A stretch of DNA of 64,000 nucleotides, from sequence record LR756502.1, one strand, 5' to 3'. A program made the position numbers and the translations under genes. Below the pieces are notes generated by a model, which was not told the origin of the DNA, ran no database searches, and saw nothing but the letters and a program-made list of their open reading frames with translations. This document shows positions 16 through 48,625 of this stretch, piece after piece. Every line of letters begins with the position of its first letter. The first letter of the stretch is position 1.

Positions 16-372
16 ATGAATAAAAAAATTCACTGTATCATAACCAAATTGATTAGTACTACTACAATAATAGTATCTATACTCTTCACCCCATTTCAAT
101 ATTACTATTGTGGTTTGAATTTCACCTGGGTTAATTTGACCATCTTGATATTAATGTCATTTATGTTCTTTTCGTTTGGGAGGTTTCAACTTCTAAAAAC
201 AAATAACCCACTAAGTAGATATAATCCATTCTCATTACACCCTAGATGGAAAACAAGAATGGATTATAGTATGGAAGAGAAACCTGGTCAACTATATCAA
301 CTTGATGATCCAACAGAAGAAGAGATATTGCAGTTGAATAGAGATAAAAAAATAAATCAGTTACTAAAATAA
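16..372 (+). CDS. Hypothetical membrane protein with C-terminal RxxKIxxLL tail
   Basis: Two hydrophobic N-terminal segments; ends NRDKKINQLLK; TAATG overlap with next gene. Confidence 0.7.
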   Translation: MNKKIHCIITKLISTTTIIVSILFTPFQYYYCGLNFTWVNLTILILMSFMFFSFGRFQLLKTNNPLSRYNPFSLHPRWKTRMDYSMEEKPGQLYQLDDPTEEEILQLNRDKKINQLLK

Positions 373-716
373 TGTCGGATAGTTTTTTTGATAGCTTTAA
401 GTCTGATGGTGTTCCAAAATCAGTCAATAATACCAAAGTAGTGCACTTTAAGAAGGAAGACTATGATGTTTATATTGGTCGTCTACCAGGTGGTAAATAT
501 AATAAGTGGGCTTATCCTAAGGAGTTGAGAGATTCTTTTCCAAAGGGGACACCAAGAAAACAGATAGTAGATGCTTATAGAGACTATGTTCTCTCTAAGC
601 CCGAATTAATTAAGGATTTATGTGAGATAAAGGATAAAGTTCTTGGTTGTTGGTGTAAGCCATCAAAGTCTTGTCATGGTGATATACTTGTTGAATTGAT
701 ATCAAAATATTGCTAA
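372..716 (+). CDS. DUF4326 family protein
   Basis: YDVYIGR, KWAYP, LGCWCKP..CHGDIL motifs. Confidence 0.85.
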   Translation: MSDSFFDSFKSDGVPKSVNNTKVVHFKKEDYDVYIGRLPGGKYNKWAYPKELRDSFPKGTPRKQIVDAYRDYVLSKPELIKDLCEIKDKVLGCWCKPSKSCHGDILVELISKYC

Positions 717-752
717 AATTAAACTAAAATAAACATCTATCATATAAAAAAC

Positions 753-1298
753 GTGTTTAATAAAAACTTTAATATAATCTTAGGTAAAAGATCAAGTGGT
801 AAAACATACCTTCTTTGGGAAATTTCAAAGATTTTTAAATCACTTGGATATAAGATATGTTTTATCGGACTATCTAATGAATTTACTGAGGGTTATGTTG
901 GTGATGATTTTCTAAAACATTTTGATCTTCATCGTAATCTTACAGATATTACTGGGAATAATGACATTAAGATGTTGGAGCTTGTAAAGGAGATAGTTGA
1001 GAGAGATAAGTTTGACTTTATATTTATAGATGATATGCATCTTAATGAAAGGATACATAAACTGATATCTGAAATTGAAGTTAGAAAAGTTTGCACATCA
1101 AACAGTATTAGTTCATCCAAGCAATCTCCAATTAGCTTTGATAAAGATTTTGATACCTATAGTATAAATAATTCTTATGATGATGAAACAATGAAGTCAG
1201 TGTCAATGATACAATATAATGGTTTATTGGTTGGTGAAATTAAAGAATTCCTACTCTCTTTAACAAGAGAATTAAAAATTAATAATGTATTAAAATGA
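753..1298 (+). CDS. Small P-loop NTPase with C-terminal tail
   Basis: GTG start; Walker A GKRSSGKT, Walker B FIFIDD; ends TRELKINNVLK. Confidence 0.7.
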   Translation: MFNKNFNIILGKRSSGKTYLLWEISKIFKSLGYKICFIGLSNEFTEGYVGDDFLKHFDLHRNLTDITGNNDIKMLELVKEIVERDKFDFIFIDDMHLNERIHKLISEIEVRKVCTSNSISSSKQSPISFDKDFDTYSINNSYDDETMKSVSMIQYNGLLVGEIKEFLLSLTRELKINNVLK

Positions 1299-2401
1299 AT
1301 TCAGTAGATAGACAATACCTTGATTTACTAAGACACATATTAGAAAATGGTGTCATAAAAACTGATAGAACCGGCACAGGAACGATTTCTGTGTTTGACT
1401 ACACAATGAGATTCAATATGAGTGAGGGTTTTCCCTTACTAACATCAAAGAAGATGTTTACTAAAGGTGTTATACATGAATTGATTTGGTTCCTTCGAGG
1501 TGATACAAATATTAAGTATCTTGTTGATAACGATGTTCATATTTGGGATGGTGATGCCTATAAGAGTTACCTAAAAAATGTCATTACTTCCTCTAATCCA
1601 TATGATAGAAACATCATATCAATGGATGTGGTTGATGGGATAGGTTCATTTAAGATTGGTGACCCTTTCAGTAAAGAAGAATTTATTGAGAAAATAAAAA
1701 CAGATTCTAGGTTTGCTAAGACATGGGGTGAATTAGGGCCGGTTTATGGTAAGCAGTGGAGAAGATGGGAATATGTTGAGGGTTCGTCTATTAGAGATGT
1801 TTCAAGAAGAGATGGTAGAGTAATACATATAGACCAAATATCAAACCTAATTAACGACCTTAAAAACAATCCAGATTCAAGAAGATTGATGGTATCTGCT
1901 TGGAACGTTGCTGAAATAGACCAAATGACACTACCCCCTTGTCACTATGGATTCCAATGTTATACATCCGAAATAACCACCTTTGAGAGAAAGAAGATAT
2001 ATTGTTTATCCATTAATAAACCAATAGAATATTCTGAGGACTTCGCTGATGTTGAATTGGATACCTTAAATGTTCCAAAAAGAATACTAAGTCTTAAGTG
2101 GAATCAAAGATCAGTTGATACTTTCTTGGGTCTACCATTTAACATCGCTTCTTATGGACTTCTACTACATATTTTAGCTAAAGAGGTCAATATGATACCT
2201 GGTGAATTAATTTTCTCAGGTGGTGATGTTCATCTATATACAAATCACGTTGATCAGGCGAAAGAGCAATTATTGAGACAAACATTTGATTTACCAAATA
2301 TAAAATTAACCAATAAGTCAATAGATAATTTGAAATATGAAGATATACAAATTCTTGATTATAAATCTGATAAAGTATTAAAAGGGGACCTATCAAACTA
2401 A
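1295..2401 (+). CDS. thyA: Thymidylate synthase
   Basis: DRTGTGT, FPLLTSKK, ELIWFLRG, LPPCH, QRSVDTFLGLPFNIASY, GGDVHLY. Confidence 0.97.
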   Translation: MNSVDRQYLDLLRHILENGVIKTDRTGTGTISVFDYTMRFNMSEGFPLLTSKKMFTKGVIHELIWFLRGDTNIKYLVDNDVHIWDGDAYKSYLKNVITSSNPYDRNIISMDVVDGIGSFKIGDPFSKEEFIEKIKTDSRFAKTWGELGPVYGKQWRRWEYVEGSSIRDVSRRDGRVIHIDQISNLINDLKNNPDSRRLMVSAWNVAEIDQMTLPPCHYGFQCYTSEITTFERKKIYCLSINKPIEYSEDFADVELDTLNVPKRILSLKWNQRSVDTFLGLPFNIASYGLLLHILAKEVNMIPGELIFSGGDVHLYTNHVDQAKEQLLRQTFDLPNIKLTNKSIDNLKYEDIQILDYKSDKVLKGDLSN

Positions 2402-2688
2402 TGAAGTATATTTCCGATATAGTGAGTTCATTTAATGATCATTTTGATATCGATCATCAAAAAGATTTTGAATCATCTGTTATTGAGTTTATAATAAGTA
2501 AGTATGGAATAAAATTTGTTGTTGATACTTTAACTGAGAAGGAGTTTAAAAGAAGACATCAGATAGGACATAAAACGGATACATTTGTTATGAAGCTTCT
2601 TCGAAACAAGAAGATGGAAATAAAATCAGAAATAGAAAGTGAATTAAAAATATACATAAGAGAACAAAAACTAAATCAAATTTTATGA
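2401..2688 (+). CDS. Hypothetical protein with C-terminal tail
   Basis: Coupled to thyA by TAATG; ends IREQKLNQIL. Confidence 0.75.
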   Translation: MKYISDIVSSFNDHFDIDHQKDFESSVIEFIISKYGIKFVVDTLTEKEFKRRHQIGHKTDTFVMKLLRNKKMEIKSEIESELKIYIREQKLNQIL

Positions 2689-3166: not shown

Positions 3167-3653
3167 TTTACAAAAAGGTCAATCTATATACGAACAATTA
3201 CAGGAACAAGTAAAAGATATAGATACTTCGAATCTATCAGATGATGTGTCGAGTGAGGTGATATCTACTGTTACCGAAGAGCAAAAGATATATTTTTGGA
3301 CAAGGTTGTATCTAAGAGACGAAAATCCAAATATTGAAATTGGTGATGATATTATAATGTCATACACACCATCTGGTGAGGAATTAAAGGCTAAATTTGT
3401 TTGCTTTGAAAAGAAAGGCCTTGGTAGGGAACAAACAGATGATGTAACATCTTATAATACAGAGGATGATAAAAAGGCTTTGTGTCTTATGATTGATTCT
3501 AAGGATGTTAATTACTCTGATCAAATACCATTTATTAGAACACTATTTAAGACAGGATTTCATTATGACTATCAATTGGTTAAAAGAGATGAGCTTATTT
3601 TTGTTCTTGAGAAGTCTGGTATAATGTTGGATTATTATGATGTAGACTTCTAA
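3156..3653 (+). CDS. Hypothetical protein
   Basis: 165-aa ORF ending the operon, convergent with next gene. Confidence 0.75.
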   Translation: MSSSLQKGQSIYEQLQEQVKDIDTSNLSDDVSSEVISTVTEEQKIYFWTRLYLRDENPNIEIGDDIIMSYTPSGEELKAKFVCFEKKGLGREQTDDVTSYNTEDDKKALCLMIDSKDVNYSDQIPFIRTLFKTGFHYDYQLVKRDELIFVLEKSGIMLDYYDVDF

Positions 3654-5161
3654 TTACATTCATAGCAGTCTACCATACCATGATCACATCTATCACAATC
3701 AAAATATCCAGATCCTTCACACTCTGAGCAATCTACTTTACCGGTACCATCACACTCTCGGCAATTTATTGGTTCTCCATCATCATCTGGCTCTTTACCA
3801 CTACCATCACAATCCGGGCAATCTACCTTACCCTCGTCACAATCACAACCAACTCTTCCATTGTCACACTCTTCACATGGGAAAGATCCACTACCACCAC
3901 AACAATCACAGGTGCCATTTCCACCATTTGTGTCTTCTAGATAGAAATCATATCCAACTGTAGATGAATTTGATATTGTTCCATTATGTGAGTAGTATTT
4001 CATTGTGTCCATATATGGGTAGTAATCAAAATTGTTCTTATCTAGTTTGACAATTATCTTGCCTTCAATTGCCTCTCCGTTGAGTAATATTGTTGTGCTT
4101 TCTGAATTTTCTTGTTTCTCTTTGTACAACCATCCATTAATAATTGCGTATTGCTTAAATAGTTCAACATCGGACTCTTTTGTGAAGTATACTCTATCCA
4201 TGAATGTTCTTCCCTTTATATCTTTCCATAGTATTGCTCTTCCTCTTATCTTTGTTTCTTCCACAACAATTTTTGTTTCCCCTGTATTTTCGTCTATTAC
4301 CTCAATACTACCTGGTTCATTCTTAAGAATTATCATTGATACTTGTTCTGGATTTTCTACATATATTGAGAAGAATTTTTGACATTTTGGATATTTCATA
4401 CAAGATCCGTTAAGTGTTCCTCCTGCTTCTGATACATATCTATCTTCGTGATACCATCTTCTAATATCTTCGCCCTTTACTATTTCAAATAATCTAAAAA
4501 CATCTTTCTCAATTTCAATTCTGGATCTAAACTGATTAACAAATTCTTCTATTTCCTTGTCAGAAACTTTTATACCTGATTTATCTAATATTCTTTTTGT
4601 GAATCTGCCTATTTTTATCTCACTCTTTGGTAGATTTGCAATATCTGATTTTAAACCATTGCTATTTATTAGTACTTCATATTCTTCTCCATCTTCTATA
4701 AACTTAAAAACCATCACAAAAAGTCCGTCCTCATATCTTTTATTCCAATATCCTTCCGCTTTGTATAAATCCTCTATTTCATTTAATGATATTTTTCTAG
4801 CTGATCCGGATTGTCCACTATTTGGAACCTTTGACTTCTTAATTCCTAGTTTCCCTTCTTGTATAGCTTTCCTTGATAGACCATCATATATATGGTCACC
4901 CAAACTACCAATATATGTATATTTTATTTCTTTAGCTCTATTGTCTGGTGTGAATGCGACCGTATCATCTTTATCGGTTAGGTCTATATAGTTTGTATTA
5001 ACATCAACCTCTTTACCTACTAAGTCACTCAATTGTTTAGCTATTGGTGATTTGATCTTAGAAAGTATACTAACGAACCTATCAGAGAAGTTAATATTGG
5101 CTTCTAGGATAATAGATATATTACTTTCTGATATGAAGTCTATATAGTTATTAATTTTCAT
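3650..5161 (-). CDS. SCM-motif domain protein with C-terminal DnaJ-type CxxCxGxG zinc-finger repeats; CTS-like N-terminus
   Basis: MKINNYIDFISE; GTLNGSCMKY, GRAILW, FMDRVY, YYPYMDT; CDCCGGSG, CPDCDGSG, CRECDGTG, CSECEGSG. Confidence 0.75.
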   Translation of the reverse strand: MKINNYIDFISESNISIILEANINFSDRFVSILSKIKSPIAKQLSDLVGKEVDVNTNYIDLTDKDDTVAFTPDNRAKEIKYTYIGSLGDHIYDGLSRKAIQEGKLGIKKSKVPNSGQSGSARKISLNEIEDLYKAEGYWNKRYEDGLFVMVFKFIEDGEEYEVLINSNGLKSDIANLPKSEIKIGRFTKRILDKSGIKVSDKEIEEFVNQFRSRIEIEKDVFRLFEIVKGEDIRRWYHEDRYVSEAGGTLNGSCMKYPKCQKFFSIYVENPEQVSMIILKNEPGSIEVIDENTGETKIVVEETKIRGRAILWKDIKGRTFMDRVYFTKESDVELFKQYAIINGWLYKEKQENSESTTILLNGEAIEGKIIVKLDKNNFDYYPYMDTMKYYSHNGTISNSSTVGYDFYLEDTNGGNGTCDCCGGSGSFPCEECDNGRVGCDCDEGKVDCPDCDGSGKEPDDDGEPINCRECDGTGKVDCSECEGSGYFDCDRCDHGMVDCYECN

Positions 5162-5852: not shown

Positions 5853-7391
5853 TTGTTAGTCGATACACAATATTTAACAAATAGTAAGCGATTGGTTGTA
5901 AGCTATGTTGATAAGACTGGTGATATAAAGCTCAAGTATTATGAGTGGGAAAATCCCATGAAATATATTACATGTGAGGACAATGATAAAGAAAAACACC
6001 CACAGTTTAGATCTTGGGATGGAAAATCTGTTAAACAAATTGAAGTAAATCATCCAGATAGATATGCTATTTATGAGTTTCTTGATTCTCTGCCTGAATC
6101 AGAAAGAGAAGAAATATTCGAATTTAATCTACCAAAAACATATTTTATTGATATAGAAACAGAGATAGTTGATGGGTTTCCAGAGGCTGCTGATGTTAAA
6201 GATGCTTTGGGTAATGTTATAAAAGAGGGAGCTTGTACAAAAGTTTTATCTGTATCAATTGTATATGATGATAAGATTATATTACTTGGATTAAAAGACA
6301 TGCCTGACGATATGCAGGAAAGAATACGTGTAAATACAAATAAATATTTTGAAAAATATAAATCGGATTATAAATTCAAGTACATAAAGTATGAGGATGA
6401 GTTTGATATGTTGTATGCTTTCTTCTACAAGATGGTCCCTAAAATGCCATTGATAACTGGGTGGAACTTCCTTAACTATGACTGGTTATATCTTGTTAAT
6501 CGTTCTAGAAAGATAAGTAAGTTTGTAAATGGTAGAGAATATAAAATAGATCCTGCAGTTTCTTCTTTAACAAAAAGACTTAATAAGATATGGTCTACTG
6601 AATTTGAAGTACCTGCTCATAGAATGATATTTGATTACATGCAGTTATATGAAGTGTGTGATACATCCATTAAGGTTAAGGAATCATCATCACTTGACTT
6701 CGTTTCTAGTAAGCTTGTTGGTGTTGAGAAGATTAAGTACACTGGATCATTACAGAAATTATATGAGGATGACTTTGAAACATTTATGTACTATAACGCG
6801 GTCGATTCGGTCTTAGTTCAAAAGATACATGAGTCCAGAAATTATATATCAATTATATATGCGATATCCGCCTTGGCTAAAATAAGAATTGTTGATGTTG
6901 TTTCTCAGATGAATAATGCTCTTGGATCACTCGCAATAACTGAGGGAGTTCTTCGAAATAGATTTAGGGAAATGGATAATATAGTTCTATTTAAGGGTGA
7001 AAAGTCTGATGGTGAAGCTACAATTGCTGGTGGTTGGGTTAAAGACCCGATTGTTGGTATGAATCAATGGTGTGTTACTTATGACTTTGCCTCACTTTAC
7101 CCAACCACACAAAGGCAATTTTTTATTGCTCCAGAAACATTTATTGGTGTTCGTGATGTTAAAAATCCTGAGTATTGTGATAACGGAAGAAAGATAGAAT
7201 TGGATAAGCATGTTATTTGTGTTAATGGTGTTGTCTTTGAAAAGAGACTATCTCCAACTTTAAGAATGCTTGAGGATGTCTATGCTGATAGAAAGAGGAA
7301 TAAAAATATTATGATGGATAAGAAGGATGAGCTTAAGAAGATAGAGGATGAAATTAAATCTATGGAACTTGAGCTAAATGGTTCTATTTAA
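5853..7391 (+). CDS. Family B DNA polymerase, N-terminal subunit (3'-5' exonuclease plus motif A) of a split enzyme
   Basis: TTG start; ExoI FIDIETE, ExoII GWNFLNYD, ExoIII YNAVD, motif A YDFASLYP; stops in the fingers before KxxxNSxYG and YGDTDS. Confidence 0.88.
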   Translation: MLVDTQYLTNSKRLVVSYVDKTGDIKLKYYEWENPMKYITCEDNDKEKHPQFRSWDGKSVKQIEVNHPDRYAIYEFLDSLPESEREEIFEFNLPKTYFIDIETEIVDGFPEAADVKDALGNVIKEGACTKVLSVSIVYDDKIILLGLKDMPDDMQERIRVNTNKYFEKYKSDYKFKYIKYEDEFDMLYAFFYKMVPKMPLITGWNFLNYDWLYLVNRSRKISKFVNGREYKIDPAVSSLTKRLNKIWSTEFEVPAHRMIFDYMQLYEVCDTSIKVKESSSLDFVSSKLVGVEKIKYTGSLQKLYEDDFETFMYYNAVDSVLVQKIHESRNYISIIYAISALAKIRIVDVVSQMNNALGSLAITEGVLRNRFREMDNIVLFKGEKSDGEATIAGGWVKDPIVGMNQWCVTYDFASLYPTTQRQFFIAPETFIGVRDVKNPEYCDNGRKIELDKHVICVNGVVFEKRLSPTLRMLEDVYADRKRNKNIMMDKKDELKKIEDEIKSMELELNGSI

Positions 7392-8300: not shown

Positions 8301-9968
8301 ATGTCATTAAAAACAGATTTAGCCTTATATAAGCCACGAAAAGAACAAAAAGAAGCAATGAGTTTTATTGACTCTGAGTGGAAGCGTGATAAAACAAACA
8401 AATTTTTCCTACTTGATCTGCCTGTTGGTGTTGGTAAATCACACTTAGCTCTTATGATTGCTGATTGGTATCAAAAGAATGTTAGCAAGATGGCAAAGGT
8501 GGATATTATTACAAACAGTAAGCTTTTACAAGACCAGTACGCCGATACATATAGTTCTATTAATGATTTAAAAGGTAAAGAGAATTATGAATGTGAGACC
8601 TACTCTTGCTCTTGTGCGCAGGGTGCTGAGTTTAGTAGACTAAATAAGACGAATTGTGAATCCTGTCCTTATTCTGGAGCTCGTGAGTCATTTATTGCTG
8701 GTAATATATCACTAACTAATTTCTATCTTTATATATTATATGCTATCTATACACCTAAACTTCTTGAGTCAAGAGGAGCTAAAGTGCTTATAGTAGATGA
8801 ATCACATGAGTTTGATGATGTTATTTCCGACTTTGTTTCAATAAAAATAACTGAAAATACAATAAAGAGACTTAAGTTTTCAAATGAATCAGAAGTTATA
8901 AAGAAGTTCAAGTCGGTAAGTTCAATTAATGACTATGTTTCATTTCTAACATTTATTTCCGGTGAGATTATATCAACTATGGATGGTATGGAAAAAGGAC
9001 TTGGGTCACAATCTAGAAATGCTAGATCTGACCAAAGAGACCTTAAAATATCAAAGATACTTAAGGTTAAGAATACCGATATTAAGATAATGCAAAATAT
9101 AACTGACTTAAAACAAAATCAGTTAAAGATTGATATTTTCTTAAAAGAGTATAAGTCTAATCCAAATAACTGGGTACTTGAAACCGGATATAATGAGAAG
9201 TTAAAACAGAAGGAGTTATCGTTGGAGCCAATTTGGGCATATGACTACTTGGATAAGTATGTATTTAGTAACTATGATATGGTTTTTCTTATGTCTGGTA
9301 CAATTCTCGATAAGAATTTATTTTGTCAATTAAATGGTCTAGATGTTACAAAGGCTGTTTACTATTCGATAAGATCCCCATTTCCTGTTAAAAATAGGCC
9401 AATATATTATATGCCTGTTGGAAAAATGAGTTATAAGTTGAAAGAGGAAACATTCAAGAAATATATTCCTTATATAAATAAAATATTGACTAAGTATAAA
9501 AACCAAAAAGGTATTATACATACTAATTCTTTTGAGTTGGCTAACTGGATAAAGAAATCAATAAATGATCCAAGGTTGATCTTTCATGATTCATCAAATA
9601 AAGATGAGATGTTGAAGATGCATTTTGATTCAGAAGAACCAACTGTTATTGTTAGTCCTAGTATGGATACTGGTGTGTCTTTTGATCACGAGAGAAGTAG
9701 ATTTCAAATAATAGCGAAGATTCCCTATCCTAGTCTTGGCTCACAAAAGAATAAACTAAGGCAGAAAAATAATCCTGAGTGGTATCAGTGGAAGACTGTC
9801 ACTGGTATAGTTCAGATGACTGGTAGATCTGTTAGGTCTGAGACTGATTGGGCTGATACTATTATAATAGATGGATCTTTTTCGGATGTTATTAGATATA
9901 GTGGTCATCTTATACCAGACTGGATACAAGATGCTATATCAAAAGTAAATGTAAAAGAAAAGGCATAA
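8301..9968 (+). CDS. DinG/XPD-like SF2 helicase
   Basis: DLPVGVGKS, KGKENYEC plus Cys cluster, VDESH, MSGTI, QMTGRSVRS. Confidence 0.88.
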   Translation: MSLKTDLALYKPRKEQKEAMSFIDSEWKRDKTNKFFLLDLPVGVGKSHLALMIADWYQKNVSKMAKVDIITNSKLLQDQYADTYSSINDLKGKENYECETYSCSCAQGAEFSRLNKTNCESCPYSGARESFIAGNISLTNFYLYILYAIYTPKLLESRGAKVLIVDESHEFDDVISDFVSIKITENTIKRLKFSNESEVIKKFKSVSSINDYVSFLTFISGEIISTMDGMEKGLGSQSRNARSDQRDLKISKILKVKNTDIKIMQNITDLKQNQLKIDIFLKEYKSNPNNWVLETGYNEKLKQKELSLEPIWAYDYLDKYVFSNYDMVFLMSGTILDKNLFCQLNGLDVTKAVYYSIRSPFPVKNRPIYYMPVGKMSYKLKEETFKKYIPYINKILTKYKNQKGIIHTNSFELANWIKKSINDPRLIFHDSSNKDEMLKMHFDSEEPTVIVSPSMDTGVSFDHERSRFQIIAKIPYPSLGSQKNKLRQKNNPEWYQWKTVTGIVQMTGRSVRSETDWADTIIIDGSFSDVIRYSGHLIPDWIQDAISKVNVKEKA

Positions 9969-11398: not shown

Positions 11399-12733
11399 AT
11401 GACTCCCCAATTAGAGAAGGTATTTTTTAATTACGTACTGCGAACAAAGAAATTCTTCGAAATAGTTAAACCTTATTTTTTCAGAAACTCAGAGATACAA
11501 TTTGTATATGGTGTTGTTCGTGAATATATGATCAAACATAATGATGCTCCAATACCTACTGCTCGCCAAATATTGGATATGGTATCTCTCGAAGATAAAG
11601 AGGGTATAATAACAAAGGATATATTAAAATCAATACTGCAAGTAGACCTAAAGGAATATGATGAGAAAAATTTTATAGAGCCTAAATTTAATGCTTGGGT
11701 ATTGTCAAATAGACTTAAAACAGGAACTGTTGATATAATCGATGAGACAAGAAATCTTGATAACATATCCGACTTTGAAAAGGCTGTTGAGGCAGCAAAT
11801 AGAATAAAGGGTATTGTTGATGAGATGTCAAGTACAAATTTTATACAAGGTGATGATATGGGATCTGATTTTGATGATGCCGAGAGTCACGTACAGGATT
11901 CCTCTAAGTTTAAGGTTAAGTCTGGATTTGAGACACTGGACCATATGCTTGGTGGTGGTTGGGATATACAGACACTTAATGTTATAATGGCTGAGACTAA
12001 CAATGGTAAATCATTGTGGATGCAAAACTTTGCATATAAGGCAGCTGATATGGGATATAATGTTCTATATATTTCACTTGAAATGAGTGAGAGAAAGGTT
12101 ATGAAAAGAATCGGGGCAATGAGATTAAAAATTCCAATTAATGACTACGATAACGCTTCTAAGGATATTGAAATGATAAGGAAGAGGATTCAATCTTTGG
12201 GTAGTTCTTCTGGGGTAGGTAGTGATTTATTTTCTAAAAAAATTGGAAAGATATATGCTAAGTTTTGGGCAGCTGGTACGGCCACTGTTGGTGACTTTGA
12301 TAATTATATACAAGCATTAAAAGAAAAGAAGGATATAAAAGTTGACCTTGTAATTGTTGATTATATTACACTTGTTGCTGCTGTTAAAGGATCAATGTCT
12401 GATAACCTTTATACAAAAGGTAAGCATTTAGCCGAAGGATTAAGAGCGGTTGGTGCTAAATACAAGGTACCGGTTATAACAGGTGTTCAGGTTGCGAAAG
12501 ATGCCTGGAACTCAGCTGATATAACACTGGAAAGTGTGCCTGAGTCAAAAGCTATAGCTGAGACTGCTGATACATTTTTTGCCATAATAAGAACTGAGGA
12601 AATGAAGAGACAGAATATGTTTAGATTTAAGCTACTTAAACAAAGAGATGGTGATTTTTTAAAATCACAAGTTAAATTGACTCTAAACCCTACATACTTA
12701 ACATTGGAGAATGATCAGTTCCTAGATACCTAA
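11399..12733 (+). CDS. Replicative DNA helicase (T4 gp41/DnaB-like)
   Basis: AETNNGKS Walker A, YISLEMSE, VIVDYI, VITGVQ, ESKAIAETAD, LKQRDG. Confidence 0.9.
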   Translation: MTPQLEKVFFNYVLRTKKFFEIVKPYFFRNSEIQFVYGVVREYMIKHNDAPIPTARQILDMVSLEDKEGIITKDILKSILQVDLKEYDEKNFIEPKFNAWVLSNRLKTGTVDIIDETRNLDNISDFEKAVEAANRIKGIVDEMSSTNFIQGDDMGSDFDDAESHVQDSSKFKVKSGFETLDHMLGGGWDIQTLNVIMAETNNGKSLWMQNFAYKAADMGYNVLYISLEMSERKVMKRIGAMRLKIPINDYDNASKDIEMIRKRIQSLGSSSGVGSDLFSKKIGKIYAKFWAAGTATVGDFDNYIQALKEKKDIKVDLVIVDYITLVAAVKGSMSDNLYTKGKHLAEGLRAVGAKYKVPVITGVQVAKDAWNSADITLESVPESKAIAETADTFFAIIRTEEMKRQNMFRFKLLKQRDGDFLKSQVKLTLNPTYLTLENDQFLDT

Positions 12734-16430: not shown

Positions 16431-17269
16431 TAAAACTTTCTAAATTTTGTATTTTTAAGCACTAGCTTTGTGTGTGTTGAGTGTGTTATGCTTACTCCAA
16501 AGTCATTTGTTACTTGTCTCTGTAGGAATGGTAATATGAAATCCTCCTCGAATGATACTTTATAACTAGATGGTATTTTTGATTTTAATGTCTCTAATGA
16601 AACTGGTAGATAGTTTTCATTTACTTCTCTATCCCAATTCTCGATATATTTATACTTTAATAGGTAATGCATAAATGTTCTATAGTTATCGTTAATAGAG
16701 CCCCACTTATCTTCAAATGATTTTAAAAATCTTTGGTCAGATATCTTTCTAACTTTCTTTACATCCTCTTTAAATTCGTTTATTTCATTCTTGTCAATCT
16801 TACTTGATGGTATCATATCTCTTATTGATATAAATTTGAAGTCTCCTCCAAATACCTGTTTTTCCCAGAAGAATTTTATAGTATTTGAATTTGAATATGA
16901 GTATACCTCATGTATTACCGAACTTAGATTTAGTAATGGTGATTTGTATCTTTGAATCTCACTAACCACCTCATTCCAATTACTCGTCAATGTGGCATTA
17001 TTTCCTAAAACCGACTTCGCCTTTGATAACATGGTTTGATCCAAATCATATCCTATTAATTTGGCTCTGGGGTTAGCTTTTGATACTTTTGATAGAAATG
17101 ATCCATCCGCACATCCAAAATCAACAATTACATCAAAATTAACTTTATCAATGAAAAACATCTTATCACTAAAAGACATACCCATCCCATCAATATATGA
17201 TTGTATGTCACTTATTGGTTTTTCTCCAACCAACTCTTCTAAGAATAACTGCCAGTTAAATATTTTCAT
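16430..17269 (-). CDS. Class I SAM-dependent methyltransferase, CTS-like N-terminus
   Basis: VIVDFGCADG, LIGYDLD, NLSSVIHEVYSY; MKIFNWQLFLEE. Confidence 0.8.
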   Translation of the reverse strand: MKIFNWQLFLEELVGEKPISDIQSYIDGMGMSFSDKMFFIDKVNFDVIVDFGCADGSFLSKVSKANPRAKLIGYDLDQTMLSKAKSVLGNNATLTSNWNEVVSEIQRYKSPLLNLSSVIHEVYSYSNSNTIKFFWEKQVFGGDFKFISIRDMIPSSKIDKNEINEFKEDVKKVRKISDQRFLKSFEDKWGSINDNYRTFMHYLLKYKYIENWDREVNENYLPVSLETLKSKIPSSYKVSFEEDFILPFLQRQVTNDFGVSITHSTHTKLVLKNTKFRKF

Positions 17270-29264: not shown

Positions 29265-29446
29265 AACCAGGAGTAATATTTGTCCCATACATTATTCAGC
29301 ACTTACCAGTGACCACTATTCAATGTGGTACATTTTCGCCTAATAAGACACTTCGTAGTAGATATTCAAGTATTTTTCTCAAGTCTAAAAACTTGATTAG
29401 AAAAGACAAAATAGAAAAGATATTAAATGAAAAACCCCTCGATTGA
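29261..29446 (+). CDS. 61-aa protein resembling the C-terminus of a T4-like major capsid protein, plus C-terminal tail
   Basis: PGVIFVPYI...GTFSPNKTLRSRY; IRKDKIEKIL. Confidence 0.6.
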   Translation: MKPGVIFVPYIIQHLPVTTIQCGTFSPNKTLRSRYSSIFLKSKNLIRKDKIEKILNEKPLD

Positions 29447-31589: not shown

Positions 31590-31623
31590 AATATCTTATG
31601 GGGATTTTTTAACTTTTGATTTT

Positions 31624-32063
31624 TTATATTAACTCGTTTAGCTTAGATTCCCTGAATGTTTTTATAAAATCAGCATCATCCACCTCTGTTTCAATAATTT
31701 CAAAGAATGATAGATTAACATATTTCATATATTTCATAGATTCCTCCTCATTTGCTTTATCATTTAACCTCCACTCATCCACAACGTCCCATCTATTTTT
31801 TGGTATACTCTTTCCGTACTTGGTGTTTAGTGAAATGTTTAGTGATTTAAGTCCTTCTACATCCTTAACAATATCTGATATATCATATGTGTATTGCTCA
31901 ATTTCAGTAACCTTCATCTCCTCAATGTTTAGCTTAATCACCTCTTTTTCGGCCTCTGATTTTGTGAAGAAGATTTTCTTTGGTGTCCCACCCCTGACTC
32001 TGGTTCGGAAAAAACTTCGTCATTATATTCATAACCTTTGCTTAAAATTACATATGCTTTCAT
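31624..32063 (-). pseudogene. Gene interrupted by an apparent 1-nt frameshift in a G-run (track shows only 31624..31941)
   Basis: ATG at 32063 lies 2 nt after the upstream stop; MKAYVILSKGYEYNDEVFSEPESG joins GGTPKKIFFTKSEAEKEVIKL by a -1 shift at about 31992; ends FRESKLNELI. Confidence 0.6.
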
Positions 32064-32065
32064 TA

Positions 32066-32566
32066 TTATTTTGTTTTATTATGTTTACTTAGCCATTTAT
32101 TTACCTGTTTCTCCGACATATCTATTATTTGTTGTTTTGTATATCCGATGTGTGTCATTATATCAAATACCATTATAAGGCAGTCTACTGACTCCAATAA
32201 CATATTCTCTTTTATCTGTTCTTTTGATTCGTCACAGTTTTTAAACCCAACCAGCTTTAGAATTTCAGCTGCTAACTCTCCAGTTTCCTCACTTAACTTA
32301 AGACCTCTTTCTACTATTCCATATTTCTCCGACTTAACTATGTCTGATGTACTTTTTACTAATTCATATACATAGTCTATTAATGGATCAATATTAATGT
32401 CATCAATTGATGGATTCATTTTCCTTTCGTAGTTCTCTATTAGAATTGAAAGTATTTCGGCTTTATTTCCTTCATCTGAATCTAGATCGGAATGGAATAT
32501 TGATTCCAATTGTTTTTGAGCCTCTGTATAATCTTCGTGACTTCTTATTGGTTTTAATGATATCAT
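32066..32566 (-). CDS. HigA-like N-terminal segment fused to a MazG-like NTP pyrophosphatase
   Basis: IRSHEDYTEAQKQLE..EGNKAEILSILIENYE; LKLSEETGELAAEIL..LLESVDCLI. Confidence 0.65.
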   Translation of the reverse strand: MISLKPIRSHEDYTEAQKQLESIFHSDLDSDEGNKAEILSILIENYERKMNPSIDDINIDPLIDYVYELVKSTSDIVKSEKYGIVERGLKLSEETGELAAEILKLVGFKNCDESKEQIKENMLLESVDCLIMVFDIMTHIGYTKQQIIDMSEKQVNKWLSKHNKTK

Positions 32567-34385: not shown

Positions 34386-36248
34386 ATGGGTATATTTAAG
34401 TATAATCAATTTATAGGAAAACCACTTACTGAGAATCTACAAGGGGCTAAAAAGCTAATGAAGGATAGATATTTGATGCTAAAATCAATAAAAGATCTAA
34501 ACCTTTTGACTGGTAAATTAAAACAGGAGTGGGATGATGGTGAAAGAAGATCATTTTCTCTTAAGGACTTTACCGAGGATCAACAAGATCTTATTAAGGC
34601 TAAATTCAGAGAGATAAAACTAACTGATGAAGAGGCTAGAAATATTGAAAAAGATCCTGGATTTATTAAGATAAGAGAGCTTGTAAAAGATACTTTGGGT
34701 TGGTGTTATATCTTTACATATTTCTACTATGTAGAAAATGTGCCATTTGAGGAACTAGAAGATATTTACAAGAAGTTGTTGGATTTTAGACCATTGTTGA
34801 GTAGATTACCTAAACCATTGGATAATAATTTCATAAATCCTAATATCAAAAATAACAATGAGGTTCTAGTTGATGAGTTGGAGAAAATTAACAGATATAG
34901 AAAGCTTAAGAGGTTTGTTGATGAACTTCCTGGTGATATGAGGAGAGAATTTGCTTCAACTTCAGAGCTTTATAAAGGAAAAATTGAGGATATAGCTGTT
35001 GCATTTGACGAGTTTGGTAAAAATGCAGAGACTGGTGTTGTTGATGAAAAAGAAAAATCTACACTACAAAAGTTATTCTTCTCTAAGATTAAAAGATATA
35101 AAGTTTTAAGAGAGGTTATACCACAAGCAGAGAACTATATTAAAGGATTGGATAATAAGAATGTTGTTAAATTCTATAAGGTAATTGAGAAGTGTAATGA
35201 AATGTTTGGTATTGTTGGTGCTGATATAGTATTTGATGAAAATGGTATACTAATACTTGATATTAAATCTTTCCAAGCTAATAAGATGTTAAATTCTAAT
35301 ACATCACATTGTATAGCTTCATATGATGGACATTGGTCCAGTTATGTTGGTACTGAGCAAGATAACAAATTTAATAAGCAATACTATATCTATAACTTTA
35401 ACTTATCATCTTCCGATAATAAGTCTATTATTGGTATAACAATTGAGCCAAATCAAAGAATAAATGCTTGTCATCTTAAAAATGACGCAGGATTTAGTGG
35501 TGATATAAGAAACTGCCTAAAGGGATGGGAAAGACAATATGATATAAAGGAAGATCTTTGGACTGTATTATCCCCTATGTCTGATGAAGACATAGCTAAG
35601 AAAAAGAGAAGAATTGCTGCTAATAGAGAAATCATAAAACCAAAAATAAAGTTGGATGAGATTCAAAAGTTGGTTAGAGAAGAAGGAGCTGATGTTAATA
35701 GAGAAAATGGTAAGCCATTGTTGAACGCTGTTCAGGAAGGAAGCTATGATAAGGTTAAATATCTACTAGAACTTGGAGCATCTCCTAATTTGAGACAAAA
35801 AGCAGAAGCAGTTATTAACCAAGCCAAGGACCTTGAAATGATTAAACTTTTGGTTAATAAGGGAGCTGAGTTGACGAGTCAAGTATTTAAGAATATTATG
35901 GAAGATAATTCAGCTGTTGAATATTGTTTACAAGCTGGTATGGATCCTAACTTTGAGAACTCATTGCCAGTAAGAACTTGTTGTAAACAAGGTAGTCTAG
36001 ATACACTTAAGTTACTTATTAAGTATGGTGCCCAAATTAAACATGCTAGAAATATGCCAATGGCTTGGGCAGCTGAGAATAATAGAAAGGACTTTATGGA
36101 GTATATGATAGGACTCGGTGTTGATACTGGATTCAGTTCTATAAAGAAATGGATTAGTCACACTACTAAGTTTGCTAAACCAGAAGATAAGAAAGAAATG
36201 ATGGACTATATAGATAAACTTATAGATTCAAAAAAAGTAACTGCGTAA
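34386..36248 (+). CDS. Ankyrin-repeat protein, CTS-like N-terminus
   Basis: GADVNRENGKPLLNAVQEGSYDKVKYLLELGASPN and further ankyrin-like units; central SHCIA motif. Confidence 0.8.
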   Translation: MGIFKYNQFIGKPLTENLQGAKKLMKDRYLMLKSIKDLNLLTGKLKQEWDDGERRSFSLKDFTEDQQDLIKAKFREIKLTDEEARNIEKDPGFIKIRELVKDTLGWCYIFTYFYYVENVPFEELEDIYKKLLDFRPLLSRLPKPLDNNFINPNIKNNNEVLVDELEKINRYRKLKRFVDELPGDMRREFASTSELYKGKIEDIAVAFDEFGKNAETGVVDEKEKSTLQKLFFSKIKRYKVLREVIPQAENYIKGLDNKNVVKFYKVIEKCNEMFGIVGADIVFDENGILILDIKSFQANKMLNSNTSHCIASYDGHWSSYVGTEQDNKFNKQYYIYNFNLSSSDNKSIIGITIEPNQRINACHLKNDAGFSGDIRNCLKGWERQYDIKEDLWTVLSPMSDEDIAKKKRRIAANREIIKPKIKLDEIQKLVREEGADVNRENGKPLLNAVQEGSYDKVKYLLELGASPNLRQKAEAVINQAKDLEMIKLLVNKGAELTSQVFKNIMEDNSAVEYCLQAGMDPNFENSLPVRTCCKQGSLDTLKLLIKYGAQIKHARNMPMAWAAENNRKDFMEYMIGLGVDTGFSSIKKWISHTTKFAKPEDKKEMMDYIDKLIDSKKVTA

Positions 36249-37785: not shown

Positions 37786-38253
37786 ATGATTGGACATCCT
37801 ATTAAACATATCGATGCTTTTGACTTCATCTTGGCGGGTAAGGCCATAGTAACTTTTCTAAATACACAAACTGATAATAGATTTACTTATAGGGTTAAGA
37901 AGGCTAAAGAGGGTGATATATTCTTTGTTAGTGTACTAACTAACCCGGAAATATACCAATATGTTGGTACTATGACAAATGGGTTATTTAGACTTGGTAA
38001 AAAATCTAAGATATCTGGAGATGCTCAATCCATTAAGGTGTTTGATTATGTTACTAAAAAATTAAAGTCTGGTTCATTGCCTAATTTTATTGAAATTTGG
38101 CACGAAGGTCGTTGTGGTCGTTGTGGTAAATCTCTTACTGTACCAGACTCTATTAAATCTGGGTTGGGCCCAGAGTGTATTAAATTGACTTTAAGTCCAG
38201 AGAAACTTAAACAAATGAGAAGAGATAAAAAACTTAAAACTATACTTGGATAA
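37786..38253 (+). CDS. DUF6011-like zinc-binding protein with C-terminal tail
   Basis: HEGRCGRCGKSLTVPDSIKSGLGPEC; ends RRDKKLKTILG; start moved downstream of the promoter. Confidence 0.8.
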   Translation: MIGHPIKHIDAFDFILAGKAIVTFLNTQTDNRFTYRVKKAKEGDIFFVSVLTNPEIYQYVGTMTNGLFRLGKKSKISGDAQSIKVFDYVTKKLKSGSLPNFIEIWHEGRCGRCGKSLTVPDSIKSGLGPECIKLTLSPEKLKQMRRDKKLKTILG

Positions 38254-44166: not shown

Positions 44167-45022
44167 GATTTTTGACATAAGTGTTCCTGATTATGATCAC
44201 TTTGATTACTATATTGACCAATTATCAAGATTGGCTAGACATAGTGATATTAAGGAACTTATATCTCTATATGAGAAAGCTGAGGATGATTTGGGTGATC
44301 TTTATGAGTATCGAATGAGAAAGTCTTCTGAAATAATTGAGTTTCTTCAAAGTACTCGAGCATATAATGATATATCATTGGATAATCTTATAAAGGATTA
44401 TCCAGTCACAAAGACATTTCAGTATGTTGGTGGTAAAAAATATCTATCAATAGATATTAGAAAGGCAAACTGGACCGTATTAAAAAGTTATGACCCACCA
44501 TTTGTAAGTGAGTTGCCAGATAACTATGAGGATCTTTTGGATAAATTTGGTATGCCAGAAGTATTTAAGAGATCTAAATCACTCAGACAATACATATTTG
44601 GTAATATAAACCCAAGAAAACAGGCAAAGGCACAGAGAGTTATAATACAGGAGGTAATTCAAAAGTTTAGTGACTTAAGTGAAGTTACACTTGAATGTAT
44701 GAAGAATGATGAGGTAATCTATTCATACACTGATATTGATTATTTAACAGATAAAATTCTAAGTAAAATTGATATATCAAGGTTTAGAATTAAACTTTTT
44801 GGTGTAGAGAAAGTGGAAGATTTTCGGATAGATTCAATAATGGATACCTCTGAGAATGTTATTTATAGAGAAATGGTTGGATGTAATGGGAATAGATTCT
44901 TTTTACTATTAAAGAAGTATATTTTCAATGAACCATTTGATATAAGGGACTTATATTTTAGAATGGATGGCAATATTGCAATTTGGAAATTAGATGGACT
45001 TGAACTAAAATTGAATGTATAA
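44141..45022 (+). CDS. Hypothetical protein with polymerase-palm-like motifs
   Basis: YLSIDIRKAN, LRQYIFG, KNDEVIY; start moved to ATG 44141. Confidence 0.65.
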   Translation: MRDVKGFCKIFDISVPDYDHFDYYIDQLSRLARHSDIKELISLYEKAEDDLGDLYEYRMRKSSEIIEFLQSTRAYNDISLDNLIKDYPVTKTFQYVGGKKYLSIDIRKANWTVLKSYDPPFVSELPDNYEDLLDKFGMPEVFKRSKSLRQYIFGNINPRKQAKAQRVIIQEVIQKFSDLSEVTLECMKNDEVIYSYTDIDYLTDKILSKIDISRFRIKLFGVEKVEDFRIDSIMDTSENVIYREMVGCNGNRFFLLLKKYIFNEPFDIRDLYFRMDGNIAIWKLDGLELKLNV

Positions 45023-45275
45023 GATTGATATTTATATAAATGGTGGTCTTTTTAAAAGTATTGATACTGTTGAAAAGATAACAAACTTATCTAGTGCTAA
45101 GTATGTTGCTCATGACTTTATGAGAGATAACTTTAAAGGATATGTGGTTAATGAAGTATCCATATCTTTTTTTGAGTGTGATGATGGGACAAATAGAACA
45201 AAAATAAAAATAAAATCTAAAGATTTATCTAGAGATATTATACTATCCGCTATATTAAAAAATGGAGTTATTTGA
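45015..45275 (+). CDS. Hypothetical protein with C-terminal tail variant
   Basis: Ends SRDIILSAILKNGVI. Confidence 0.65.
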   Translation: MYKIDIYINGGLFKSIDTVEKITNLSSAKYVAHDFMRDNFKGYVVNEVSISFFECDDGTNRTKIKIKSKDLSRDIILSAILKNGVI

Positions 45276-45888: not shown

Positions 45889-45892
45889 AGAT

Positions 45893-46288: not shown

Positions 46289-46661
46289 GAAGAATGTTGT
46301 AGTTGAGCTTACTCCCTTCTTATATGAGGATGGTAATACATATTATTTTAAAATTGTAAAACGTGAGTATAGTAATAACTTTCACGACCTATATGTTTAT
46401 GAAAAGATTATTACTAAAACAAAAACATTTTTTGGCAAGGAAAAGATAACAGAGGATTTAATTAAATTAAATGACTCACCTGAGATAGTTTCTATAAATC
46501 TTGATACATATGACATAAAAAATTCCATTAAGAAGGTATTGGTATCAACAAGAGTTCAAGAAGTCTTAAAAAATTGGGATGGGTTAGTCGGTAATATACC
46601 AGATGATGTTAAGATAAGTCTTAAGAGAGATGGTAAGTTGAAAAGTATTCTCGGTGAATAA
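46281..46661 (+). CDS. Hypothetical protein with C-terminal tail
   Basis: Ends KRDGKLKSILGE. Confidence 0.75.
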   Translation: MSRKNVVVELTPFLYEDGNTYYFKIVKREYSNNFHDLYVYEKIITKTKTFFGKEKITEDLIKLNDSPEIVSINLDTYDIKNSIKKVLVSTRVQEVLKNWDGLVGNIPDDVKISLKRDGKLKSILGE

Positions 46662-46943: not shown

Positions 46944-46950
46944 TTAATAT

Positions 46951-46959
46951 TAATATATA
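46951..46959 (+). promoter_or_regulatory. Putative late promoter TAATATATA
   Basis: 4 nt before ATG 46964. Confidence 0.7.
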
Positions 46960-46963
46960 GTTT

Positions 46964-47446: not shown

Positions 47447-47448
47447 TT

Positions 47449-47922
47449 ATGACAATTAAAAAATGGTTTGATTACAACCAACCTGACAAATTAAAAGTGT
47501 CTGGTGGTATAGTTCTTATTTTAAATGGGACCAAGATTTTACTCGCCCATCCAACAAAAAGTAAGTGGTATGAAACATATTCTGTCCCTAAGGGTGGTGT
47601 TGATGATGGGGAATCTGAGATGGATGCTGCTATAAGAGAAATACGAGAAGAGACTTCACTTATTGTAACAAAGGATATGATAGTAAATCCAGATGATCCA
47701 ATTATTATAAATTATAAGAACAAGGCTGGTATAACATATAAAAAACTGGTATTGTATAAAATTTATATAAATAATATTGGTGAGGTTGGTATGACTTCAG
47801 AAATCTTGGATAAGAGTAATCTACAACTTAGGGAAGTTGATTGGTGTGGTTTTCTTGATAAGAAGGAAGCGCAGTTGAGAATATTTCATAGGATGGTTAG
47901 TCTATTGGATCTAATAGACTAA
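47449..47922 (+). CDS. Nudix hydrolase
   Basis: PKGGVDDGESEMDAAIREIREETSL Nudix box. Confidence 0.9.
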   Translation: MTIKKWFDYNQPDKLKVSGGIVLILNGTKILLAHPTKSKWYETYSVPKGGVDDGESEMDAAIREIREETSLIVTKDMIVNPDDPIIINYKNKAGITYKKLVLYKIYINNIGEVGMTSEILDKSNLQLREVDWCGFLDKKEAQLRIFHRMVSLLDLID

Positions 47923-47952
47923 ACAATTTATACTTTTACTGGTATAATCTCT

Positions 47953-48303
47953 ATGGAAGAAATTGAAAAAATAGAACTGGATTTGGAAAATCCAATATTT
48001 GCATTCTATATTAATGTCGCTAATTTGCCTAGACAACAAGTAGATCAAATTATGTCTCATTTTACAAAACTTACAAATTATAGCAATGTGACATGTTGGA
48101 TATTAGCATCGGATGTTACAAAAGTGGAGTGTGTATATGATGGCAAGTCAAAAATTAGGGATAAGGAAATTTCACGCTTTATAAAAGAAATAAATAAGAG
48201 AGTTGATATACTATCCAACTCTCGTAATTTTGAGGATTTCAAGATAAACATCCGAGATTGGAGACTAAAAGAAATCATAGAAAATGAGTCACAAAAAGAA
48301 TAA
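47953..48303 (+). CDS. Hypothetical protein with C-terminal tail variant
   Basis: Ends IRDWRLKEIIENESQKE. Confidence 0.75.
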   Translation: MEEIEKIELDLENPIFAFYINVANLPRQQVDQIMSHFTKLTNYSNVTCWILASDVTKVECVYDGKSKIRDKEISRFIKEINKRVDILSNSRNFEDFKINIRDWRLKEIIENESQKE

Positions 48304-48625
48304 AATAGAAATACTTGATGCTACTATCAAAAAGGCCGAGATGGATGAACATAATCTTGGGTGGAATGATGACTATGAATATGGTATGGAGAATGATTAT
48401 GATGATTGGGATGACCCCTATTACTGTTGTGAGTCTTGTACCCCAAGATTTCCGATGGGTGGGTTGGATTACGAATATGATATGTCAAAGTCCAACAAAG
48501 ATGGTAGAATGATTGACCTTGATTCCATTTCAATATCTAGAAAAAGAAACTCAATAATAGATAAAGTTCTTGGCGAACAAGTTGGAGTAACAACAATAGG
48601 TGATGTTATAAATGCAAAGCTATAG
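48284..48625 (+). CDS. Acidic hypothetical protein with tail variant
   Basis: D/Y-rich, CCESC; KRNSIIDKVLGE. Confidence 0.7.
   Translation: MSHKKNKIEILDATIKKAEMDEHNLGWNDDYEYGMENDYDDWDDPYYCCESCTPRFPMGGLDYEYDMSKSNKDGRMIDLDSISISRKRNSIIDKVLGEQVGVTTIGDVINAKL

Follow-up and report, generated by a model that had tools for sequence, protein, structure and literature searches.

A candidate clade-specific, portable C-terminal recognition helix on otherwise unrelated proteins of a huge phage

Tail-bearing genes in a 64-kb window of LR756502.1

The sequence record LR756502.1 is an unannotated entry described as 'uncultured phage', which comprises 642,428 bp and has a guanine-plus-cytosine (GC) content of around 31%. 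The window considered here is a stretch of 64,000 nucleotides (64 kb), which corresponds to positions 248001-312000 of this record with 100% identity and encodes several proteins that share a short C-terminal peptide, referred to below as the tail. An earlier note, made from the letters of the window alone, had described the tail as the nonamer R-x-x-K-[IL]-x-x-[ILV]-[IL] on about a dozen unrelated proteins and had proposed that it routes them to a common partner. Translation places all 12 quoted peptides at the ends of the respective open reading frames (ORFs). Nine of them reach scores of 16-27 bits with a position matrix, which was trained genome-wide by iteration and whose columns are numbered from the arginine (0) to +8, and three are weak (6.6-9.0 bits). 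For the genome-wide analysis, the 642-kb record was treated as 14 separate pieces, namely the window and 13 others, which were never joined and contain 1,011 ORFs. Coordinates refer to the window unless the record is named. The tail-bearing genes (carriers) and weak candidates of the window are the following:

16..372, plus strand: carrier of 118 amino acids with two N-terminal hydrophobic segments; tail at 340..366, one residue after it; 25.3 bits
753..1298, plus strand: carrier of 181 amino acids, P-loop nucleoside triphosphatase-like; tail at 1266..1292, one residue after it; 18.2 bits
2401..2688, plus strand: ORFan carrier of 95 amino acids; tail at 2659..2685, exactly at the C-terminus; 27.2 bits
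29261..29446, plus strand: micro-ORF carrier of 61 amino acids at the end of the PrkA-DUF444 operon; tail at 29399..29425, six residues after it; 20.0 bits
31624..31941, minus strand: carrier of 105 amino acids; tail at 31627..31653, at the C-terminus and followed by a hairpin; 16.1 bits
37786..38253, plus strand: DUF6011 (Zn-ribbon) carrier of 155 amino acids, phrog_20259; tail at 38221..38247, one residue after it
45015..45275, plus strand: carrier of 86 amino acids with I for K at +3; tail at 45231..45257, five residues after it; 18.7 bits
46281..46661, plus strand: ORFan carrier of 126 amino acids; tail at 46626..46652, two residues after it; 20.7 bits
48284..48625, plus strand: protein of 113 amino acids with a sub-terminal copy; motif at 48545..48571, 17 residues after it; 19.5 bits
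47953..48303, plus strand: weak candidate of 116 amino acids; motif-like stretch at 48253..48279, seven residues after it; 9.0 bits
29142..29264, plus strand: weak candidate, basic micro-ORF of 40 amino acids after the DUF444 gene; motif-like stretch at 29220..29246; 6.9 bits
27756..27899, plus strand: weak candidate, basic micro-ORF of 47 amino acids between the PrkA and DUF444 genes; motif-like stretch at 27852..27878; 6.6 bits

As the earlier note had stated, the tail is found on micro-ORFs as well as on a membrane protein, a P-loop protein and a protein with a Zn-ribbon (DUF6011). The stop codon of 753..1298 overlaps the start of the thymidylate synthase gene, and the encoded protein has weak matches to the Pfam families AAA_14 and TK. 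The DUF6011/phrog_20259 assignment of 37786..38253 derives from Pfam and PHROG matches, and no match in Pfam or PHROG was obtained for the protein encoded at 2401..2688. The stop codon of 29261..29446 lies within a terminator-like hairpin, and a syntenic counterpart with a similar ending is present in the related 634-kb genome LR745206; syntenic micro-ORFs in relatives also show basic endings like that of 29142..29264. The carrier 31624..31941(-) overlaps a longer plus-strand shadow ORF (31616..32092) and was recovered among the ORFs that had been rejected by the greedy longest-ORF caller. This caller missed at least nine tail-bearing ORFs, for instance at record positions 630445..630636(-), 636271..637183(-) and 16853..17182(+), and all carrier counts are therefore lower bounds.

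Excess, selection and predicted shape of the tail

Within the window, the nonamer is found no more than 15 residues from the end in 7 of 88 ORFs, whereas 2,000 shuffles gave 0.05 on average and 2 at most. Across the whole record, the strict pattern matches 93 times, and 73 of these matches lie within 10 residues of the C-terminus versus 0.31 +/- 0.49 in shuffled proteins, which is the comparison of C-termini with shuffled controls that the earlier note had suggested. The iterated matrix assigns a tail to 154 of the 1,011 ORFs (0.1 in shuffles), and a loose pattern with columns +1 to +3 unconstrained assigns one to 173 (5.9 +/- 2.7 in shuffles), so that 15-17% of all ORFs, or around one in six, are tailed. 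The tails described earlier are thus real, but 'about a dozen' is a large understatement of their number, which is explained by the size of the window. The motif is more common at C-termini than internally or in shuffled proteins, as had been expected: 154 of its 181 copies are C-terminal and 27 are internal or sub-terminal, the latter compared with around 2 expected. The internal copies include those in 8301..9968, where the motif lies about 310 residues before the end, and in 48284..48625, and the protein encoded at record positions 623545..623880 has two copies; such internal copies may be relics of gene fusions in arrays.

The columns of the 154 matrix-defined carriers are composed as follows:

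Column 0: R 154
Column +1: D 75, N 34, E 31
Column +3: K 109, I 12, R 11
Column +4: L 84, I 70
Column +5: N 51, D 37, K 24
Column +7: I 89, L 53, V 12
Column +8: L 92, G 37, I 16, F 5

Between 0 and 12 residues follow column +8, with exactly one residue in 76 of the 154 carriers, and in the strict-pattern set the residue next to +8 is mostly K, D, G, N, S or E. In the 37 carriers with Gly at +8, one further I, L or V almost always ends the protein, and only these Gly-containing variants end in I or L.

The proteins that carry the tail are otherwise unrelated, as had been claimed. An all-against-all BLASTP comparison of the 154 bodies without their tails resulted in 147 separate components, with small paralogue groups in the form of 7 pairs, and the assumption of one paralogous family is therefore unsupported. 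Pfam matches were found for 5 of 150 carriers, each to another family, namely Flavokinase, DUF6011, BtpA, DUF2158 and a Zn-ribbon. With its 9-10 residues on unrelated folds, the tail resembles a short linear docking motif. Carriers are mostly small and make up 32% of the ORFs of 80-120 amino acids versus 1% of the ORFs of more than 400 amino acids, while their bodies span 50-622 amino acids; hydrophobic segments are present in 9% of the carrier bodies versus 13% of other small proteins. The carrier genes are packed in tight co-directional arrays, which are densest at 606-642 kb (minus strand, around 40 carriers) and 1-20 kb (plus strand) of the record, and these two arrays diverge from one point if the genome is taken as circular.

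The tail is portable, since it can be present or absent within one protein family and is found on mutually dissimilar bodies. Homologues of the DUF6011 protein in Sinorhizobium phage phiM9 and Caulobacter phage CcrColossus end just past the Zn-ribbon and are tail-less, whereas the copy in LR745206 continues into the tail. Most of 120 metagenomic DUF6011 homologues are tailed and around 15 are tail-less, and contigs with a tail-less copy still contain other tailed genes. In the P-loop family of 753..1298, the tail is the most conserved block and nearly invariant in eight homologues of around 50% identity; a profile search of 1.84 billion proteins found it in around 63 of 66 full-length representatives of 50% identity clusters. 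Three homologues of the protein encoded at 16..372 (52-91% identity) also keep the tail columns, and the tail is again the best-conserved block. In all three families, the tail is more conserved than its flanks.

Conservation of this kind could in principle reflect a nucleotide-level element, such as a promoter, a ribosome-loading region or a recombination site, or a by-product of AT-rich DNA. The GC content of the genome (31%), the C-termini of non-carriers, which are also somewhat rich in K, I and L, and a bias towards A-ending codons within the tail would fit such an origin; however, residue shuffles that preserve the composition of each protein yield 0.1-6 tailed ORFs as compared with 154-173 observed, and a compositional artefact is therefore rejected. 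Furthermore, no synonymous codon is missing at the conserved columns, the codon use for Arg (0), Asp (+1) and Ile (+4) equals that of the genome, copies of the DNA pattern in bacterial genomes never mark the end of an ORF, and the motif is kept in homologues that have diverged to around 50% protein identity. An element acting at the DNA level is thus rejected, and the nucleotide-level explanation as a whole is close to refuted. Judged by these sequence comparisons, the tail is under purifying selection at the protein level.

The bias towards A-ending codons concerns columns +3 to +8 and is stronger if the next gene starts within 10 nucleotides (65% vs. 54%, p=0.005). The start of the next gene is overlapped by 57% of the carriers, as compared with 33% of other genes, and the bias has therefore been attributed to the overlapping start region of the next gene. 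The same two observations could also be explained by a function of the nascent peptide at termination. The last ten residues, which are inside the ribosome when the stop codon is reached, would slow release, and translation would thereby restart more readily on the next, overlapping gene; the host phylum is one in which initiation does not depend on Shine-Dalgarno pairing. This explanation would account for the sharply peaked and genome-specific distance to the stop codon, and TGA stops in 46 of 154 carriers versus 123 of 857 other genes are consistent with ATGA overlaps. However, 36 of the 154 carriers lack a closely coupled next gene (25 convergent ends and 11 gaps of at least 40 nucleotides), terminator-like hairpins mark the ends of 29261..29446 and 31624..31941(-), between 0 and 12 residues separate the motif from the stop codon, and the 27 internal copies are not only tolerated but enriched. 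In addition, conservation along one amphipathic face suggests a folded helix, which is not obviously required by the exit tunnel, and a nascent-peptide role is considered improbable.

A helical form of the tail is predicted by AlphaFold2. In the DUF6011 protein, the tail forms helix 138-154 with a predicted local distance difference test (pLDDT) score of 74-78, compared with more than 90 in the core and a mean of 89.8, and in the P-loop protein the terminal helix 163-180 includes the tail. The predicted helix is continuous and comprises 17-18 residues, and the columns before the motif are not Gly-rich. On a helical wheel, the sector of 300-100 degrees contains the informative columns 0, +1, +3, +4, +7 and +8, with the weak columns on the other side; the tail is thus predicted to have one conserved helical face, which consists of aliphatic and charged residues. 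The spacing 0/+4/+7 corresponds to core positions of a coiled coil, with the Arg in the core. A search of the tail profile against the PDB gave chance matches only, the best of which (E=1, not significant) is the ionic-layer stretch of an R-SNARE helix, and the fold of the DUF6011 carrier had no PDB match at E<=0.001.

Distribution, dialects and expression class

A Bacteroidetes host is predicted for LR756502.1; in the work of Al-Shayeb et al. 2020 (PMC7162821), the largest four of the curated genomes were assigned to the 'Mahaphage' clade with predicted Bacteroidetes hosts. The portal protein of LR756502.1 is of the T4 gp20 type, and its identity to portal proteins of other phages is as follows:

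LR745206 (634 kb): 79.5%
LR756504 (636 kb): 54.5%
LR756501/3 (735 kb): 50%
LR756500 (462 kb): 38%
Lak phages: 31%
Tenacibaculum phage PTm1: 30%

A back-translated pattern of the Gly-containing variant identified 64 loci in the IMG/VR database, on contigs of 4-483 kb with a GC content of 22-47%; true tails are present at 62 of these 64, and the loci contain 1,014 ORFs, of which 251 are tailed. In contrast, 596 gigabases of bacterial and archaeal genomes contained 22 matches to the pattern, none of which lies at the end of a tailed ORF. No tails were seen in the first and last 50 kb, which were sampled, of the 735-kb, 462-kb and Lak-B8 genomes, and no cultured example was found: the first 50 kb of the Chryseobacterium jumbo phage MA9V-2 contain 0 tailed ORFs out of 60, the Tenacibaculum phages not being sampled. 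Ten 45-residue tail fragments found nothing in Pfam, no tail-matching family is present in PHROGs, and no description of the tail was found in Pfam, PHROGs, the PDB or the literature searched. As far as these searches reach, the tail is restricted to viruses and clade-specific.

The first 50 kb of LR756504 contain 26 tailed ORFs out of 149 (0.85 in shuffles), whose tails follow a different dialect:

K at +1: 17 of 26 in LR756504, 2 of 173 in LR756502 (p=3e-16)
D at +1: 0 of 26 in LR756504, 80 of 173 in LR756502 (p=5.3e-07)
I at +3: 18 of 26 in LR756504, 13 of 173 in LR756502 (p=1e-11)
Protein end exactly at +8: 19 of 26 in LR756504, 13 of 173 in LR756502 (p=8.5e-13)

In addition, the conserved stretch before the Arg is longer in LR756504 than in LR756502. 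Half of the LR756504 carriers (13 of 26) have singleton bodies, and the others form paralogue groups of 5, 4, 2 and 2. If a single reader co-evolved with the tail, unrelated proteins would be expected to shift in concert, as is the case here.

The tail could instead be an intrinsic structural helix without a shared partner, which would serve self-association or stabilisation and would have been inherited by small ORFan proteins; the carriers would largely represent one hyper-diverged paralogous lineage or would have gained the ends of neighbouring genes through in-frame deletions. The dense tandem arrays of carriers, with around 40 at 606-642 kb and again at 1-20 kb, are in line with such a history, as are the few paralogue groups (7 pairs in LR756502; 5, 4, 2 and 2 in LR756504), and the coiled-coil-like 0/+4/+7 spacing and the non-significant SNARE-layer match (E=1) would suit an oligomerisation helix. 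However, a generic stabiliser would need neither the invariant Arg nor the fixed polar residues at +1 and +3 nor a genome-wide dialect, and the same oligomerisation helix on around 160 proteins would mix them randomly. The bodies of 50-622 amino acids also differ in fold (membrane, P-loop, Zn-ribbon and kinase-like), and the tail was added to the DUF6011 family, whose outside homologues lack it. An intrinsic helix therefore appears rather unlikely.

Information on the timing of carrier expression comes from the intergenic sequences. By count, the most enriched intergenic 9-mer of the record is TAATATATA, which precedes 160 of the 1,011 starts at two preferred distances of around -13 and -30. 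Since the T4-type portal gene (record positions 222545..224260) lies behind TAATATATA, this sequence is a plausible phage-specific late promoter with very short leaders. Examples in the window are located upstream of 3650..5161(-), 10531, 17272..17832(-), 20213, 23278, 55776 and 61113. The first of these precedes a gene for a protein of 503 amino acids with a Cys-rich C-terminal repeat, which contains several CxxC pairs and has no Pfam or PHROG match. The earlier note had placed the carriers in operons with host-type or AAAC..TATAA promoters rather than directly behind this sequence. The latter part was borne out, since only 1 of 154 carriers lies directly behind TAATATATA as compared with 159 of 857 other genes (p=1.4e-11). 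By transcription unit, 3 of 232 genes are carriers if the unit is headed by TAATATATA, 26 of 153 if it is headed by a TAnnTTTG box and 125 of 626 in the rest, so that 151 of 779 genes outside the TAATATATA-headed units are carriers. The assignment to a host-type promoter class is no more than suggestive: the TAnnTTTG box is enriched in intergenic DNA and clear boxes lie ahead of several carrier arrays, but a crude orientation control gave 69 forward and 64 reverse boxes, with no bias over chance. Taken together, the carriers are probably non-late, early proteins.

The expression class also bears on the idea that the tail targets its carriers to the virion or capsid, so that many small proteins would be loaded into the very large head and delivered together with the DNA, in analogy to scaffold-binding helices and to the cargo peptides of HK97-fold shells. 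The portability of the peptide, its terminal position on unrelated proteins and the T4-type lineage of the phage, as defined by the portal match, would suit such targeting, and so would the variant with a hydrophobic-Gly-hydrophobic ending (37 of 154). However, carriers account for just 3 of the 232 genes in the TAATATATA-headed units, the class to which the portal gene belongs, the tail is not preceded by a Gly/Ser-rich linker, the predicted helix is continuous with the body, and some carriers have membrane segments. To our knowledge, around 160 different cargo species would also be unprecedented, and packaging into the head is regarded as highly improbable.

Other genes of the window include a replication and nucleotide-metabolism neighbourhood (1295..2401, 8301..9968, 11399..12733 and 13844..16396), which comprises thymidylate synthase, a DEAD_2-type helicase, a DnaB-like helicase and the large subunit of a class I ribonucleotide reductase with an ATP-cone. 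A 512-amino acid ORF at 5853..7391 has partial matches to family-B DNA polymerases, which cover the exonuclease part and the start of the polymerase, and is adjoined by an ORF on the opposite strand; the polymerase may be encoded in pieces. A long plus-strand ORF from around 62520 runs past the end of the window (62520..64000), and the short ORFs inside it are shadows. Scans of the window for tRNAs and Rfam families gave no matches.

A proposed common reader and comparison with known signals

On balance, the tail is probably best described as a candidate clade-specific, portable C-terminal recognition helix, that is, a tag read by a common partner. An amphipathic helix of around 17 residues, the last ten of which would constitute the signal, appears to have been added to around 160 otherwise unrelated, mostly small and non-late (probably early) phage proteins, and one trans-acting partner, which would co-evolve with the tail, would recognise all carriers. 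From the earlier proposal of a portable motif that routes proteins to a common partner, portability and selection have held up, while we infer the partner itself. In a more far-reaching and tentative form of this reading, the tail may act in some huge phages as a virus-encoded C-terminal 'zip code' with genome-specific dialects, by which around one sixth of the proteome, consisting of non-late accessory proteins, is routed to a single phage-specified reader, be it a compartment, a scaffold or an unfolding machine. The outcome that we favour, with considerable doubt, is hand-over to an AAA+ unfoldase or protease, which would result in a common timed turnover of the carriers and for which either the phage PrkA/DUF444 pair or a host machine could serve as the reader. 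We lean slightly towards this outcome because the distance from the tail to the chain end is tight and genome-specific, because the carriers form a non-late class, and because of the distribution of PrkA described below; an almost equally likely alternative is that the carriers are tethered to a hub or a phage-made site and not degraded.

Candidates for the reader that are encoded in the window are the following:

25831..27756, plus strand: PrkA gene (Pfam AAA_PrkA and PrkA, E=2.9e-167)
27880..29142, plus strand: DUF444/YeaH-like gene (Pfam DUF444, E=5.8e-147)
34386..36248: gene for an ankyrin-repeat protein of around 620-660 amino acids, which in relatives is conserved closely upstream of the DUF6011 gene (6505..8385 in L104 and 6319..8310 in L106)

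The PrkA-DUF444 operon extends over 25831..29446 and is interleaved with three basic micro-ORFs of 47, 40 and 61 amino acids. Syntenic micro-ORFs are present in LR745206, and a micro-ORF with a similar basic ending lies directly 3' of PrkA in the IMG/VR relatives L115 and L129. The E. coli homologue of PrkA is required for bulk cytoplasmic protein turnover (PMC13684143). Homologues of PrkA were found in 3 of 3 complete tail-bearing genomes versus 0 of 3 sampled tail-less relatives, and PrkA/DUF444, which the earlier note had named as a possible reader, is weakly implicated by this co-occurrence. The ankyrin-repeat protein is present in the 642-kb and 634-kb genomes but has no homologue in the tail-bearing 636-kb genome; it thus does not track the tail and was rejected as a reader.

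Several points weigh against a common reader or against its preferred outcome. The co-occurrence of PrkA with tails is weak, because the three PrkA-positive genomes are sister taxa and hence not independent, and PrkA is common in tail-less viral contigs: at 36 PrkA-bearing viral loci with a GC content of 36-60%, 0 of 532 ORFs are tailed, so that the presence of PrkA does not suffice for tails and is not specific to them. The motif does not strictly depend on a free terminus, because 27 copies are internal and up to 12 residues follow the motif. The conserved charges and the helical form differ from known bacterial degradation tags, and some carriers resemble enzymes that would be expected to persist, such as the P-loop protein beside thymidylate synthase and the proteins with Flavokinase and BtpA matches. 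Finally, recombination within a genome, by which tails would spread among the ends of neighbouring genes, could also produce concerted dialects.

Huge phages have hundreds of small genes for which no function is known. A shared tag on around 160 genes, and on a quarter of the ORFs in related viral DNA, groups such genes into one class and implies one mechanism for all carriers, and the reader of the tail would be central to the control of infection in this clade. The tail thereby provides a simple sequence marker for likely early or accessory genes of uncultured phages, and its dialects represent a built-in covariation signal for finding the partner. If it does act as an address or in timed turnover, it would be the first proteome-scale sorting code described for a bacteriophage, and a zip code of this kind would be the bacterial-virus counterpart of organelle targeting signals.

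Among known systems, the tags of AAA+ proteases, such as ssrA-type tags and the tails of ClpX-tethering adaptors, are likewise short, located at or near the C-terminus and transferable, and they direct many proteins to one machine and one fate, as the tail would do. Tags of this type lie at the extreme C-terminus with a free carboxylate; the chain of the carriers ends most often one residue after +8 (76 of 154; range 0-12), with 27 internal copies, and in LR756504 mostly at +8 itself (19 of 26). The last residues of AAA+ degradation tags are small or non-polar, whereas +8 is followed in most cases by K, D, G, N, S or E. Furthermore, the tail is longer, predicted to be helical and has an invariant Arg, acidic and basic columns and a variable last residue; it occurs on around 16% of a viral proteome with dialects, and its link to a protease is putative. 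Peroxisomal targeting signals of the PTS1 type, which are read by a repeat-domain receptor, are also portable, C-terminal, in tight register and present on many unrelated soluble proteins. However, PTS1 is a eukaryotic tripeptide at the extreme end, while the tail comprises ten residues, which are followed by 0-12 more.

Encapsulin cargo peptides and HK97 scaffold-type helices resemble the tail as short C-terminal peptides that direct unrelated cargo to one shell, and the head lineage of this phage is of the HK97/T4 type. In contrast to encapsulin cargo, which is encoded beside the shell gene and co-expressed with it, the around 160 carriers are rare in the late class (of the genes in TAATATATA-headed units, 3 of 232 are carriers, versus 151 of 779 elsewhere) and lack a Gly/Ser-rich linker, the tail being predicted as a helix. 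The T4-type capsid targeting sequence is N-terminal and removed by the prohead protease, whereas the motif is C-terminal in 154 of 181 copies. The PIP-box-like sliding-clamp tails of the T4 polymerase and late-transcription factors share C-terminal docking on a hub, a T4-related background and a similar hydrophobic spacing. They depend on aromatic residues at the last hydrophobic positions and are found on a handful of replication and transcription proteins, whereas the tail is aliphatic (+7: I 89, L 53, V 12; +8: L 92, G 37, I 16, F 5) and 145 of 150 carriers are without a recognisable function.

SAP, HeH and Rho_N domains, in which two helices flank a Gly turn, were rejected, because ten 45-residue tail fragments had no match to them at E<=10 and the proteins end at or one residue past the Gly. 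Sorting signals of exported proteins, such as the C-terminal domains of type IX secretion or sortase and exosortase signals, which combine an export signal with a long C-terminal domain or a membrane-spanning tail, were also rejected, since the tail is an amphipathic stretch of 10-18 residues and hydrophobic segments are present in 9% of carriers versus 13% of other small proteins. The F-box-like domains of poxvirus ankyrin proteins and the C-terminal Dot/Icm signals share the combination of a variable body with a constant C-terminal docking element on a large part of the proteome; however, these are domains of 40-50 residues or loose signals that are directed at eukaryotes, whereas the tail is a sharp decapeptide in a bacteriophage. 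Since the tail departs from each of these systems in defining features, it is placed among C-terminal recognition signals in general rather than in any named family.

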